63,791 bases of DNA, filler included, from Salisapilia sapeloensis CBS 127946 (GCA_023334545.1; 6 parts of 6 records of this genome joined end to end with filler, not necessarily neighbours in it); one strand, 5' to 3'; positions 42,219 to 47,393 are shown, numbered from the whole stretch's first letter. Notes: generated from the sequence alone by a model not told the origin. A program made the numbers and translations.

Positions 42219-42372
42219 ATAACGGCTTCAACATATTAGCCTCTGGCAATTGGAATGATGACGCGTGCATCATCACTTCCGCCTCACTTCGTATGTATAT
42301 GTACGAAATCATCGGGAACAATTGTCATTGTGTCCCATGTAATGATTAGCCCATTACATCACCCTCCTCTTA
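42219..42372 (-). repeat. Polypurine tract (42359-42371) and start of the 3' LTR (TGTAATG at 42358, 140 bp to contig end)
   Basis: The minus strand reads AAGAGGAGGGTGA immediately followed by TGTAATGGGC. Confidence 0.8.
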
Positions 42373-42624
42373 AGGTTCAAGCCACGTCGTCTTCGTGTGC
42401 TTGATAGGCTTCTTCATCACCATCTTAACGGATCTTGTAAGCTTCCTGAGTCTTGGATTGTCCTTACTTCATTTTATGTATTCTTCACTTCAGAGCATCT
42501 CAAAGTTCTTTGTCCTTGCCCGGTGACTTGCGAAAACTAGGTTTTCAAAACATGTTCGAAATGTTCGAGCGTTTCGAACTTCGAGCGAATTGTCAACCAC
42601 TAGATGGTTCGACACAATTTTAAG

Positions 42625-42734
42625 CCAATCGTCGATTCAGAATGACCCTACTAGCCAATCGCTGATTTTGAACAATTTCAGCCATTCACCGAATTAGTGG
42701 CAGACAGGCCACTAAGGCTCATTTTGGAATTTGC
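42625..42734 (+). promoter_or_regulatory. Putative antisense promoter inside the retrotransposon: two CCAAT boxes plus oomycete Inr-FPR
   Basis: AGCCAATCG with CCAAT at 42625 and 42655. GCTCATTTTGGAATTTGC at 42717-42734 contains Inr TCATTTT and FPR AATTTGC. There is no ATG between it and 42978. Confidence 0.65.
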
Positions 42735-42977
42735 CTTGTAGTGCACAGCTCGGTGCAAACTTCGGGGATTGCTCGAAGCCATCGACTACGCGTCCTTAAT
42801 CATCGACCCTGTACTCCGTGGCACAGATCCAAACGAGTGGGTTGGTGAGACGAGGTTACCGTGTTCTTGTCGTTTGGAAGTAGTAAAGTTTCTTTACACA
42901 GAGTCGTCCAGCCAATAGTACGTTGTACTTAGGCATTCCAAATCGCTTTAGACTCCAAGTCAAGCGTCTCTGAAATA

Positions 42978-43997
42978 ATGAATTCTGGTCCGCAGCCAAA
43001 TCGGACTTCTAGTCCACCTCGGACTGAGAATAAGAGGAAGGAGCGATCGGACGATCCTCCACCATCAAACGAAAGCAACAAGCGACCGAAAGGTCCTTTT
43101 GCTTCCATTACCCTCTATGACATCTCCATGATCCACAACAACCGTGGTCGTGAATCATACTATCGCGATCGGTTCCATGCGTGGCGCAAGGTAAACCGAC
43201 GCGATGATCCAGACCAACCCATCGATGCTATGACTCAGTCATGGCGTACCTTTATTCGATTAGAGAACGAAGGTCACATTGACGTAATCTTGCGTCGAGG
43301 GACTGATCGGCATAACACCTCGTGGCGGGGTGTTAACAATGAGAGTCATACTCGCGAACGATATCCGGGACGTCGGCCAACAAGTTGGTCCGAGGCTCCC
43401 AGGTATCCTCGCTGGAAGGAAAGCCGCGCCAACGTACGCGATAGTAGCGTTGAGCGCTCGGCTTCATCCTTCGACCATTCTTCTTCTTACGCTTCAAGCG
43501 ATCCTCATGGTCCACAATCGCCTCCACGTTCCAGCGCTGATCACCATGGGAGTCAACCAATGGAGGTGGCACTGAACGGCGAAACCTTGGACCGTCTCCT
43601 TGACTGGAAGACTGATCACCAGAATCGGATGGACGACCTTGAACGTCAGAATCTTGAACTTCAGTCCAAGGTTGCTGATTGTCAGTTCGTGGTTCAGAAG
43701 TTGGAGCTGAAGAATACTGAGCTTGAGCAGAAGGATCTTGAGCGTGAGCGGGCTCATGCAAGGTTGATGGCGTCTCTTGAAGAGGCTGGTGCGACGATGC
43801 AAACTCTTCGTTCGGACTTGGACGTTCGTTTGCAGCGGCTCGAGAACGTCGAGACTCAAGCGTACGATGTGCTTCAGCGTATCCATGCTGAGAAGCAGAA
43901 CGACCGTCAAGAGATCGATTCTGTTGCAAACGAGGTGAAGAGGCTCGAGAAGAGGACTTCTCGAGTTGAGCATCACTTGGACTCGCGCCGTCGCTAG
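42978..43997 (+). CDS. Antisense ORF of the retrotransposon, 339 aa, NLS-like N-terminus and C-terminal coiled coil
   Basis: Uninterrupted ATG-to-TAG ORF with KRKER..KRPK and heptad-rich LERQNLELQSKV...LEKRTSRVEHHL, preceded by a core promoter. Confidence 0.7.
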   Translation: MNSGPQPNRTSSPPRTENKRKERSDDPPPSNESNKRPKGPFASITLYDISMIHNNRGRESYYRDRFHAWRKVNRRDDPDQPIDAMTQSWRTFIRLENEGHIDVILRRGTDRHNTSWRGVNNESHTRERYPGRRPTSWSEAPRYPRWKESRANVRDSSVERSASSFDHSSSYASSDPHGPQSPPRSSADHHGSQPMEVALNGETLDRLLDWKTDHQNRMDDLERQNLELQSKVADCQFVVQKLELKNTELEQKDLERERAHARLMASLEEAGATMQTLRSDLDVRLQRLENVETQAYDVLQRIHAEKQNDRQEIDSVANEVKRLEKRTSRVEHHLDSRRR

Positions 43998-44320
43998 GCG
44001 TTGGAGAACTACTTGGTAGGTATCTTTTTAGCCGACCAACATAGAACGTAGGGTGTAGCCTCATTGCAGTAGGAATGTCTAATTTGTAGGCATTTCCATT
44101 GCGCTTCAGAACCTTAAACGGTTCAATATACCTCGGAAGTAATTTGCTACTTCCCAAATGAGACACGCTTTGCTCTGGTAAACCGGCAGTACTCAATAAT
44201 ACAAGGTCGTTAACCTTGAAAATTTCTTCATTCCTTCTTCCTTGCTTATTGGCTTGCTCTTTTTGTGCGTCTTGTGCAGCAGCCATAGCATCTCGTACGA
44301 ATCGTATAATGGCTTCTGTA
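43333..44320 (-). CDS. Pol C-terminus: integrase GPY/F module, long linker and chromodomain (out of frame with upstream pol)
   Basis: KLLPRYIEPFKVL, HPTFYVGRLK, WNVEAIVDH...YRVRWRGFPSSEDTWEP..L. Confidence 0.85.
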
Positions 44321-47300
44321 TTAGGAAATCTTCCATAACTTCCTTATCTCTCGGGCGTGATTTGCTCAAAGGCGAAAAGTTCGCGTCAATAGCATGAGCA
44401 TCCGTCGCGTCCGTGCTGTTGGAATGCACGGGCGACGACCCTCCCCCACTTTGGGTAGGGGCAACCCCACCAAGCGCAGCAGCGGTGCGTGGGTGCCGAC
44501 CATTGTTGATATAGAACGGGGTCAGTCCTGTGGAGGCATGAGTCGAGTTGTTCACCGCAAACTCAACCAGTGGTAAGAACGACGACCACTCGCTGAATCC
44601 TGTCGCGTAACTGCGAAGGATATCTTCAATCACTCTATTCACACGTTCTGTTTGTCCGTCGGTCTCAGGATGGGCAGCGGTAGACATTCGCAATGTCGTG
44701 CCCAGTCTAGCAAAGACTTCACGCCAAATCGCAGCAGTGAAACGCGGATCGCGGTCCGAGACCAGCTCATCCGGAAGTCCGTGGAGTTTAAACACCGTGT
44801 CGAGGAAGGTCTGTGCCGATTCTTCGGCTGTGATTTCAGCGCGCACAGCAGCAAGGTGAACCATCTTGCTAAACCTATCGACCATGGTGAGAATGCCAGT
44901 ACGTCCCTGTGCATCCGATGGGAGTCCAAACACAAAATCAAGACTGACAGAGCGCCATGCATCCGATGGAACGGGTAAAAGCTGTAGTGGAGCCCTACTT
45001 GCTTGAGAAGGCTTCACTCGTTGGCAGATCTCACAAGTACGCACGTATTTGCGTATCCACTTGTACATATGCGGCCAGTAAAACTCTCTTGAAACGGCTA
45101 AGAATGTCTTCTCTCGGCCTAGATGGCCACCTGTCGGAACATCATGATGTTCGTAGATAATCTGGTCACGAAGATCACTATCGTTCGGAACGACAATTCT
45201 GCCTGACTCTGTCTTGTCTAAGGCATACCAAAGTAAACCATCTTCCAGGTAATATCGGTCCAAGCTTGCTCGAATGCGCGGAGGTAAATCCTTACCGTTG
45301 CTCTCGTTACTATTCGAAAGGAATCTGAGCAAAGCATTGTATGACGGGTCATGACGATATGCTGTTGCTATAGCCTGTCGCAGCGAAGATGTTCCCATCA
45401 CTCGGACTGCGTTTACCTCTTGCGTTGCACATGCCGTACAATTATCTGACGGTTGTCTTTCTTGACGTGGGTCGTAGTCTGGACGACGAGATAGCGCATC
45501 AGCAAGGATGTTACTCTTACCAGGCTTGTAGTGTACAACAAAGTTATACTCCGCGAAGAACGATAACCATCGTGCCATACGCTGAGACAGATGAGGTGTT
45601 TTAACAGCGGTTCGAAGCGAAGCGTGATCAGTGTAAATCACAAATTGCTGTTCACCAAGAAGATGCACTCGGAACTTGACCAGTGCATACTTCATCGCGA
45701 GCAATTCCTTGTCATGTACAGGGTAGTTCCTTTCGGCTGCGCGTAGTTGTCTCGACTCGTATGCAATGACACGCTCATGGCCATTCTTGTCATGTTGCAT
45801 AAGAGCGCAACCAATGCCGAAATCACTTGCATCGCATACAACGTGATACGGGCGATCGTCGTCTGGAAGTGCCAACACGGGCGCTTCTCTCAACTTCTGT
45901 TTGACTTGGTCGAAAGCAGCCTGTTGTGTCTCGGTCCAATTCCATGGAACATCCTTCTTCAACAATTGTGTGATCGGCTGCACCATTGCAGCATAATTAC
46001 GCGTGTATTTGTGGAGATAGTTGGCCATACCAAGCCATTGACGAAGCTGTTTTACGGATGTAGGTGTCGGCCATTCGTCAATTGCTCGAACCTTTTCTGG
46101 ATCAGCTCGAACACCATTCCTGCCAACGTAGCAACCTAGCACAAGGATCTCTGGTGCGCAAAATACACACTTCTTCAGGTTGCCATACAGCTTGTTTTCT
46201 CGCATGACCTCGAACACTTGACGTAGATGGCTAAGATGAACGTCCGTCTCTGACTTATTCCCTGTACCTGAGCTATGAACGAATATATCGTCAAAGTAGC
46301 TCGGTGCGAACGCTCGTAGGGGACGTAATAGATTCGTCACCATACGATTGAAAGTTGCTGGAGCATTTTTCAAACCTTGTGGCATCACAAGCCACTCCCA
46401 AAGCATACCGCTCGGTGTACTCACAGCAGTCAATGGAACATCTTGTTCCCTCATCCGAATTTGATAGAATCCATCCATCAAATCAATCGCACTGAACATC
46501 GTGCTTCCCGCCATTCCATTAATGATCATATCTTTTCGTGGAACTGGCGTTTGTGCTGGTATTGTCGCATCATTTAACTTATTAAATGCATGCACAATCC
46601 TCCAGCCTCCTGTCGCTTTCTTCACACAGAACGTAGGTGAGCAATGAGGAGACTTGCTCTCACGTACGTGTCCTGCCTTGCGTCGTTTTTCAAAGAACGC
46701 ATCTATTGCTTCCACCTGTTCCCGGGGTAGCGGCCACTGCCGCGTAACGCAATACTTCGTGCCATCACTCAAATCAATCTCATGACGAACTCCTCGGTCC
46801 GAGCGCAGTTCATCAGGCACGGCATCAGGAAAGATATCCTGGAACTCTCTTGCCAGTTCATATACTGGGCTCTTCTTCAAAGCTTCCCACGATTGAGTCT
46901 CGTATCGCTCAACTCGCTTGCTCTTTTCCAACACGTCTACGTCCAACGTAGATGACGTGTTGATCTCTTCATAGTCGTTCTTGATGGCGACCGAGCACAC
47001 TTGGGCAATATCACCGTTCCTAAGGGATTTCTTAAATTCCTTTACGCCCATCTCTCTCAAATCGAGAAGCTCTTTCAGGTCGGTTGGAGGACGTTCCAAA
47101 CCGATATCTTGCACGCGAACAACCCGTCCTTTGTTGTTACAAATCAACGTGCGAATTCTCTCCGTTGAAATTTCATGGCCTTTGAAATTTCCTTCACTAG
47201 TAGATAGCTTGATAATTGCATGGTCTTGATCAGGGATTTTGAAGTCGTTATTTTGTATATCCACTAATGGAATCTCATTATCGTCAACATGGTTTGCCGT

Positions 47301-47390
47301 CGAAGATGCGGGGCCATCGCTCGCCGGATCTTCATTGACATCACAGTTGGTAGTCTCCGTGTCTTCTTCTAATGCAGCATGTAGCCACAC
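44193..47390 (-). CDS. Pol polyprotein RT-RNase H-integrase core (runs out of frame near 44317)
   Basis: 1065-aa ORF with WRIVHAFNKLN, MPQGLKNAPATF, YFDD, CDASDFGIG and integrase D,D,E-type motifs. Confidence 0.95.
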   Translation of the reverse strand: MWLHAALEEDTETTNCDVNEDPASDGPASSTANHVDDNEIPLVDIQNNDFKIPDQDHAIIKLSTSEGNFKGHEISTERIRTLICNNKGRVVRVQDIGLERPPTDLKELLDLREMGVKEFKKSLRNGDIAQVCSVAIKNDYEEINTSSTLDVDVLEKSKRVERYETQSWEALKKSPVYELAREFQDIFPDAVPDELRSDRGVRHEIDLSDGTKYCVTRQWPLPREQVEAIDAFFEKRRKAGHVRESKSPHCSPTFCVKKATGGWRIVHAFNKLNDATIPAQTPVPRKDMIINGMAGSTMFSAIDLMDGFYQIRMREQDVPLTAVSTPSGMLWEWLVMPQGLKNAPATFNRMVTNLLRPLRAFAPSYFDDIFVHSSGTGNKSETDVHLSHLRQVFEVMRENKLYGNLKKCVFCAPEILVLGCYVGRNGVRADPEKVRAIDEWPTPTSVKQLRQWLGMANYLHKYTRNYAAMVQPITQLLKKDVPWNWTETQQAAFDQVKQKLREAPVLALPDDDRPYHVVCDASDFGIGCALMQHDKNGHERVIAYESRQLRAAERNYPVHDKELLAMKYALVKFRVHLLGEQQFVIYTDHASLRTAVKTPHLSQRMARWLSFFAEYNFVVHYKPGKSNILADALSRRPDYDPRQERQPSDNCTACATQEVNAVRVMGTSSLRQAIATAYRHDPSYNALLRFLSNSNESNGKDLPPRIRASLDRYYLEDGLLWYALDKTESGRIVVPNDSDLRDQIIYEHHDVPTGGHLGREKTFLAVSREFYWPHMYKWIRKYVRTCEICQRVKPSQASRAPLQLLPVPSDAWRSVSLDFVFGLPSDAQGRTGILTMVDRFSKMVHLAAVRAEITAEESAQTFLDTVFKLHGLPDELVSDRDPRFTAAIWREVFARLGTTLRMSTAAHPETDGQTERVNRVIEDILRSYATGFSEWSSFLPLVEFAVNNSTHASTGLTPFYINNGRHPRTAAALGGVAPTQSGGGSSPVHSNSTDATDAHAIDANFSPLSKSRPRDKEVMEDFLIQKPLYDSYEMLWLLHKTHKKSKPISKEEGMKKFSRLTTLYY

Positions 47391-47393
47391 GGA

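Follow-up and report, generated by a model that had tools for sequence, protein, structure and literature searches.

A predicted antisense gene conserved opposite the chromodomain end of pol in oomycete Ty3/Gypsy retrotransposons

In HIV-1, the antisense gene ASP overlaps a sense gene, and Ty1 has antisense RNAs. Antisense transcripts without coding capacity are found in Drosophila micropia (PMC7264820), and the HBZ protein of HTLV-1 is an antisense product that is nuclear, dimerizes through a coiled-coil-type zipper and regulates its element (PMC7264820, PMC11963269). In plants, the Retand/Tat elements have antisense ORFs between pol and the 3′ LTR, including Grande (gene23), RIRE2, Retand and PvRetro13. 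These ORFs are kept in most copies, have their own promoter where this was studied (Grande), and mostly encode a TRP28 domain; their function is unknown, and some of the products are nuclear (PMC7264820, PMC11963269). The word "overlap" is absent from the treatment of the plant antisense ORFs in both papers (PMC7264820, PMC11963269), and antisense ORFs are not mentioned in the study of oomycete retrotransposons of PMC5348765. The preliminary description of the locus presented here knew of no such gene in oomycete chromoviruses, and the literature searches made for this analysis also found none.

The locus belongs to Salisapilia sapeloensis CBS 127946 (GCA_023334545.1) and lies in a stretch of 63,791 nucleotides, filler included, in which parts of six records of the genome are joined end to end (the window, from whose first letter all positions are counted). 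The genome piece examined (42219–47393) carries on its minus strand the 3′ two thirds of a Ty3/Gypsy pol (43333–47390, cut on the 5′ side by the edge of the piece). Pfam places in it RVT_1, RT_RNaseH, Integrase_H2C2, rve, SH3_Tf2-1 and a C-terminal Chromo domain, including the order of RT, RNase H and integrase expected of Ty3/Gypsy elements. The Tf2-1-like SH3 domain of the integrase C-terminus (PF24626, E = 4.7e-14) is at 44020–44208, minus strand, and is followed by a low-complexity linker (43534–44019, minus strand; 28% amino acid identity among lineages) and by the chromodomain (43342–43533, minus strand; 63% amino acid identity among lineages), which is found in the final 66 residues of pol (PF00385, E = 7e-13). 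No second (archaeal-type) RNase H was detected in pol by Pfam, and the element thus appears unlike the Chronos group of PMC5348765. The piece leaves out the 5′ LTR, the PBS and gag, and the placement of the element among the chromoviruses, by its domain content, is putative. Beyond the pol stop at 43333 there is an internal region of 960 nt (42373–43332), which includes the upstream region of the antisense gene and its first 118 codons. It reaches to the polypurine tract (PPT; 42360–42372, minus strand), a purine run directly inside the LTR edge that is kept across lineages, and beside the PPT is the TG... edge of the 3′ LTR, present in its inner part (42219–42359, minus strand) and cut by the edge of the piece. 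The pol linker between the SH3 domain and the chromodomain had been called unusually long; its 162 aa in the window compare with 119–181 aa in eight oomycete relatives, and the length is a clade-wide property, not one special to this element.

On the plus strand, an ORF of 339 aa plus stop (42978–43997) begins with an ATG in the 960-nt 3′ region. Of its 1020 nt, 665 (43333–43997) overlap the minus-strand pol tail, where neither frame is interrupted; in this the coordinates confirm the preliminary description. The pol chromodomain faces the predicted disordered residues 113–200 of the antisense protein, and the linker, at 43534–43997, faces its coiled coil. The antisense gene had also been described as intact, which is correct for the ORF; pol of this copy, however, is frameshifted once, upstream of the overlap, which gives two reading frames in the piece, and the insertion may therefore be dead. 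As in the plant Retand/Tat elements, the internal region carries near its 3′ end an extra gene antisense to gag-pol, and its start is between pol and the 3′ LTR, yet two thirds of the oomycete gene is dual-coding with pol, unlike what the plant descriptions give. The plant hosts of such genes are non-chromovirus Tat/Retand elements with 3–6.5 kb from pol to the LTR, whereas here the element is from an oomycete, has a chromodomain and has 960 nt in this place. Pfam also finds no Transposase_28/TRP28 domain (PF04195) in the antisense protein. Because of the missing TRP28, the chromodomain, the 960-nt region and the two-thirds overlap, the gene is not considered a member of the plant Retand/Tat class, which it resembles in position and orientation.

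The pol linker is rich in S, P, Q and R, and a G+C-rich region of this kind may be poor in stops on either strand, so that the antisense ORF could be a product of chance. Two more frames are partly open there, a 160-aa ORF on the minus strand (43494–43976) and an 81-aa ORF on the plus strand. The antisense ORF lies in a stop-free run of 354 codons, and none of the remaining non-pol frames of the piece stays open for more than 177. When the synonymous codons of the pol tail were permuted, the antisense frame was open over the 221-codon overlap in a fraction of 5e-5 of 20,000 trials (P = 5e-5 with the codon order of the pol tail permuted), and it was open at P = 3e-3 when codons were drawn from pol-wide usage. 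For the 118 open codons that abut pol in the non-coding part, a first-order Markov null gave P = 0.008. Simulation therefore did not bear out the concern, raised in the preliminary description, that ORFs of this length arise readily from the codon usage of the pol linker (P = 5e-5 to 3e-3). The 160-aa frame is accounted for as a by-product and not a gene: it is the codon-aligned antisense of the coiled-coil frame, has no Pfam match, and escapes stops since TTA, CTA and TCA do not occur among the codons of the coiled coil; a comparable by-product ORF is present in two related loci, L003 and L004. The RSCU correlation with pol is weak (r = 0.30 for the whole antisense ORF and −0.07 for its non-overlapping part) and is based on too few codons to inform. 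The chance reading is refuted by these nulls together with the homologues, their conserved layout and the codon-position substitution patterns presented below, and its probability is considered negligible.

A word-indexed protein search for homologues with the single antisense sequence as query gave no match, and an exhaustive HMMER search gave 19 representatives, the best of which is also 339 aa long (39% identity, E = 1e-41). The profile built from these matches led to 57 clusters. The named members are almost all annotated as "hypothetical protein" of 330–360 aa in Globisporangium splendens (GCA_006386115.1), where about 235 member sequences were counted in clusters of up to 78, and the remaining ones are unnamed Logan, JGI and ENA proteins. 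A metagenome scan with the single antisense protein as query returned no relative, and one with a small alignment returned four loci. In the alignment of the family, a basic N-terminus is followed by ~65 well-conserved residues, among which aromatic and basic positions are invariant; the middle is variable and rich in S, R and P, and after it a conserved helix-start motif leads into a long helical region. Look-ups of the exact antisense protein and pol tail sequences matched no contig, and a scan of viral contigs was empty. Sequence searches found no sister copies of the window's own element family, the closest antisense protein being the one 39% identical, and the conservation of the antisense gene described here is that between lineages and not within this element family.

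DNA was available for 12 loci of the family, L001–L008 (Logan, NCBI) and L011–L014 (JGI metagenomes). In all 12, the family ORF faces the end of a pol with a C-terminal chromodomain; its start lies past the pol stop, and ~700 nt of it overlap the chromodomain and linker. It is full and uninterrupted in eight of the 12 and shortened or once interrupted in the other four, as expected of decaying copies. The phase between the antisense and pol frames, checked from the ORF coordinates, is identical in the window, L001, L003 and L004, with antisense codon positions 1, 2 and 3 paired with pol positions 1, 3 and 2, respectively. The LTR edge and the PPT are common to the window, L003, L004/5, L007, L008, L011 and L014, and the antisense ATG is 65–75 nt away from the LTR edge in the G. 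splendens-like lineages and ~620 nt away in the window and L007.

Three G. splendens gene models (P0124, P0125 and P0132) fuse the family protein to other sequences. In these models the antisense gene appeared to be on the pol strand, and for P0132 this arrangement was rejected from the DNA of L008, where two neighbouring elements in opposite orientation had been joined by the annotator. P0124 and P0125 resemble P0132 by sequence; the DNA was checked for P0132 only. Fused models of this kind could speak for a captured or domesticated host gene that merely lies beside element fragments. This origin is regarded as extremely improbable, since the P0132 fusion arose in annotation, from two adjacent elements in inverted orientation, the gene has a constant position and phase inside the element at 65–620 nt from the conserved PPT/LTR edge, and it exists in hundreds of copies, with no single-copy host homologue among the 1.84 billion representatives covered by the HMMER search.

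For the analysis of selection, codons were threaded on the antisense protein alignment of six and then seven lineages, and the differences were counted by codon position. In the N domain, which has no pol overlap, the differences at antisense positions 1/2/3 are 0.33/0.29/0.56, with the peak at the antisense wobble position. Opposite the chromodomain the values are 0.22/0.46/0.22, and the peak at position 2 corresponds to the pol wobble position; in the coiled coil opposite the pol linker they are 0.40/0.33/0.57, and the peak is again at the antisense wobble. A frame-blind nucleotide alignment gives matching position values. In the alignment threaded on pol, the SH3 and chromodomain regions peak normally at the pol wobble, and differences in the linker are most frequent at pol position 2, the wobble position of the antisense frame. 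The antisense-frame pN/pS (NG86) is 0.22–0.65 in the N domain and 0.31–0.82 in the coiled coil, below 1 in 21 of 21 pairs, and 0.86–1.77 opposite the chromodomain; as synonymous sites are saturated, these values overstate dN/dS. Selection is thus detectable in each frame, with a wobble signal that switches strand by region, and both frames are open and both proteins alignable across lineages in a fixed phase. By this comparison of sequences, the antisense ORF is a protein-coding gene under purifying selection, and the constraint alternates between the strands along the overlap. The latter agrees with the alternation of structured parts between the strands that had been noticed in the preliminary description.

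The functional product could instead be an antisense RNA, regulatory or dsRNA-forming, with the ORF incidental. Micropia and other elements have non-coding antisense transcripts (PMC7264820), and a transcript from this locus would be complementary to the genomic RNA at its 3′ end. The antisense transcription predicted here would cover the 3′ part of the element and might be regulatory, and is in this respect like that of micropia and Ty1; unlike those RNAs, however, the oomycete antisense transcript would have a protein frame under purifying selection. An RNA product does not predict antisense-frame wobble substitution or an N-domain pN/pS below 1, nor does it predict a protein family at 30–45% identity or a heptad pattern, and it is disfavoured as very improbable. 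Insertions decay neutrally, and conservation between diverged lineages therefore means that the elements leaving descendants carried the gene intact; selection across diverging element lineages, in turn, implies that the gene acts for the element. The antisense ORF is thus very probably a real third, element-encoded accessory gene that is kept by element-level selection.

The architecture of the antisense protein was predicted with AlphaFold2 from the family alignment. Residues 1–44 (42978–43109, plus strand) form a basic low-complexity N-terminus of low pLDDT, with 9 K/R in 44 residues in two clusters; it resembles an NLS, is common to the homologues, and may provide nuclear import. Residues 45–112 (43110–43313, plus strand), outside the pol overlap, are predicted as a conserved three-helix N domain (pLDDT ~90; helices 59–72, 82–98 and 101–110), having as invariant columns I, G, Y, F, W, P, W and L. 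Next is a disordered S/R/P-rich stretch, residues 113–200 (43314–43577, plus strand; pLDDT ~40), mostly opposite the chromodomain. Residues 201–339 (43578–43994, plus strand) are a continuous heptad coiled coil opposite the pol linker, modelled as a single helix from 201 to 338 (pLDDT 98). The family-averaged hydrophobicity in this part has at period 3.5 a power of 1.87, against 0.14 in shuffles (reached in 0 of 5000), and the heptad register is nearly continuous, with one shift near residue 292. The model agrees with the preliminary description, which had proposed an NLS-like N-terminus, a small globular segment and ~130 aa of coiled coil, and gives a basic N-terminus, a three-helix domain and ~138 aa of coiled coil.

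Pfam has no family at threshold for the window antisense protein or for four homologues. Matches to sequence profiles of the PDB were limited to weak, generic coiled coils (GCN4, E = 0.027; 6fia, E = 0.55), and Foldseek searches of the PDB and BFVD, with the N domain and with the full model, gave sub-threshold coiled-coil noise only. An HMG-box relationship was rejected, having a few Foldseek rows that are non-significant (E ~6). The predicted N domain therefore appears to be a new domain without a recognisable relative in Pfam, the PDB or Foldseek. The order of L1 ORF1p, a coiled coil followed by RRM and CTD, is reversed here, and no RRM was detected. In its logic, HBZ is the closest analogy, as a regulator that is encoded antisense near the 3′ end of its element, is nuclear and dimerises by a zipper; neither HBZ nor ASP has similarity to the antisense protein in sequence, Pfam or fold searches. 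A bZIP domain is also absent, with no Pfam match and no basic region before the helix.

The oomycete core promoter includes an INR (YCAYTYY) and an FPR (MWTTTNC) with a 2-nt spacer (PMC3599244). The combined pattern YCAYTYY-NN-MWTTTNC matches exactly once in the piece, on the plus strand at 42719–42734, as a perfect INR+FPR match and a candidate promoter and start for the antisense gene, 244 nt upstream of the ATG. This distance exceeds the range of P. infestans leaders, 32–144 nt (PMC3599244). The INR+FPR block is conserved with L007 and L001, which have 1–2 mismatches, and the lineages with a short upstream region have an imperfect INR-like block (1–2 mismatches) ending right at the ATG. Additionally, a non-coding block upstream of the ATG (42813–42841, plus strand) is near-invariant in the window, L001 and L007, and is limited to the long-upstream lineages. 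Tandem Repeats Finder reported nothing in the antisense upstream region. The motif positions point to a candidate promoter that would be internal to the element and not in the LTR. HBZ differs here, as its promoter is in the LTR, and its host and element lineage are unrelated.

A wider oomycete pattern is suggested by two more loci. Among pol relatives for which DNA was available, L009 is the closest (69% identity in integrase). Its antisense ORF, of 378 aa, matches in place and phase: the start is past the pol stop, and the chromodomain and the linker are overlapped. In L010, from Phytophthora fragariae, there is a homologue of this ORF, interrupted once, and the two share an extra Cys-containing middle segment (BLASTP 4e-13). 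Between the N-terminal segment of the L009/L010 proteins and the N domain of the window family there is an in-register alignment, which is suggestive but non-significant (hhalign E = 0.0028, probability 11%). Whole-protein hhalign between L009/L010 and the window family aligned only the chromodomain-facing stretch, and this alignment was discounted because it follows from chromodomain conservation. The one copy of L015 (P. cinnamomi) that was fetched has neither a chromodomain nor an antisense ORF, and says little on distribution.

Here it is proposed, as the probable best overall explanation, that this is a selected antisense gene with a trans-acting accessory role. The two genes share DNA by partitioned constraint: the folded chromodomain is paired with a tolerant disordered spacer of the antisense protein, and where the antisense protein requires its coiled coil, pol has only a tolerant low-complexity linker. 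The gene would be transcribed from its own promoter inside the element (INR+FPR at 42719–42734), and the product may oligomerise by a parallel heptad coiled coil of ~138 residues and thereby display its small three-helix domain, basic and aromatic, in several copies. The protein probably enters the nucleus via its basic N-terminus. By analogy, the most likely role, offered tentatively, would be that of a trans-acting accessory factor for the expression of the element, its chromatin state or the integration complex; the specific biochemical role is a guess, because similarity to proteins of known function is absent. A nuclear role in anti-silencing, in the particle or in targeting, as put forward in the preliminary description, is likewise conjectural.

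The main rival to this helper role is self-restraint, in which the coiled-coil protein would control copy number by interfering with its own particle assembly or integration, in a logic like that of Ty1 p22. The evidence for a real conserved gene serves this rival equally, and the data presented here do not separate a helper from a restrainer. Coiled-coil oligomers can poison assemblies, and G. splendens tolerates hundreds of copies; however, an inhibitor would be harder to keep by element-level selection across lineages at 30–45% identity, and the protein has no similarity to Gag or capsid in Pfam. Self-restraint is therefore rated as unlikely, and a gene acting on behalf of the element is preferred.

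In its broadest form, the preferred reading of an element-serving gene would make it an ancient third gene, overprinted on the strand antisense to the flexible linker between integrase and chromodomain, and standard and required in a large clade of oomycete chromodomain retrotransposons that includes the Phytophthora subfamily. Its product would be a nuclear coiled-coil factor of a new kind, which would serve the element by acting on the chromatin or the silencing of the host. This extension is possible, and is put forward with more doubt than belief. If true, these elements would be three-gene "complex" retroelements, analogous to complex retroviruses, with textbook-clean partitioned dual coding.

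Antisense accessory genes, known from the plant Retand/Tat elements and a few retroviruses, have for the most part no settled role. The gene described here adds a new setting, in another supergroup of eukaryotes and another lineage of elements, and a new protein family, so far annotated as hundreds of "hypothetical proteins" and several mis-fused G. splendens models. Constraint is divided between the two strands with unusual clarity, which is useful for understanding how overlapping genes arise and persist. Furthermore, oomycetes are plant pathogens with genomes shaped by Gypsy elements, and the finding suggests that a conserved gene of these elements is systematically overlooked in oomycete genome annotations and TE libraries.

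The pol frame of the window copy (43333-47390, minus strand) carries one break, a frameshift, and the piece ends before the element's gag, protease region and 5' LTR are reached. Despite this single pol frameshift, the antisense ORF of the same copy is intact. A third open frame was also found opposite the coiled coil of the antisense protein, as its codon-aligned complement, at window 43494-43976 and in two related loci carrying the same antisense family, L003 (10559-11035) and L004 (983-1699), always on the minus strand. This frame, which recurs in relatives, was rejected as a gene and attributed to the codon choice of the coiled coil, which leaves its complement open.

Upstream of the antisense ATG, a match to the oomycete INR+FPR core-promoter motif, following the supramotif definitions of PMC3599244, is present on the plus strand at window 42719-42734. 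It is the sole match in the piece, lies 244 nt 5' of the start codon, and sits in a block conserved with the related contigs L007 and L001. The lineages with a short upstream region (L003, L004, L005, L008, L011 and L014) have an INR-like block 17 nt upstream of the ATG, with one or two mismatches to INR+FPR and its end abutting the start codon; if this block is used, the leader would measure only about 14 nt.

A second non-coding block, nearly invariant, lies upstream of the antisense ATG (window 42813-42841, plus strand; L001 209-235; L007 about 421-432; L002 1-12), and is confined to lineages whose upstream region is long, about 620 nt. The start of the L002 contig falls exactly within this block. 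On the polypurine tract side of the upstream region, short repeats containing TTCGA form loose clusters (window 42540-42600, L007 about 60-160), for which Tandem Repeats Finder gave no report.

Hundreds of members of the antisense family carry no annotation beyond hypothetical protein. In Globisporangium splendens, the public gene model P0132 joins pol pieces from one element with the antisense ORF of an inverted element next to it, as the DNA of locus L008 shows, and the models P0124 and P0125 look alike from their sequences. The short-read-derived contigs with the antisense gene (L001, L002, L004-L007, L011-L014) are all 1.2-1.8 kb long, starting roughly at the LTR edge or in the upstream region and ending a few hundred nt beyond the antisense stop. 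Among them, the six from Logan (L001, L002, L004-L007) showed no poly(A) at the contig ends inspected.

In other oomycete chromodomain elements, the corresponding place is taken, with the phase unchanged, by a second antisense ORF family, at most a putative relative of the window's (L009 2157-3293 and L010 6645-7971, both minus strand). The L009 and L010 ORFs have a Cys-containing middle segment in common. The L010 element belongs to Phytophthora fragariae, and its antisense ORF is interrupted once. In the Phytophthora cinnamomi relative L015 (6600-9000), pol ends just past the SH3 domain, with neither chromodomain nor antisense ORF; it represents either truncation of this copy or a lineage lacking the antisense gene.

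Eight oomycete relatives were examined for the length of the linker that separates the SH3 domain of integrase from the chromodomain (P0003, P0006, P0010, P0015, P0073, P0078, P0091 and P0063), and in every one it falls within 119-181 aa; the long linker is thus clade-wide, as expected if an antisense gene sits opposite it.
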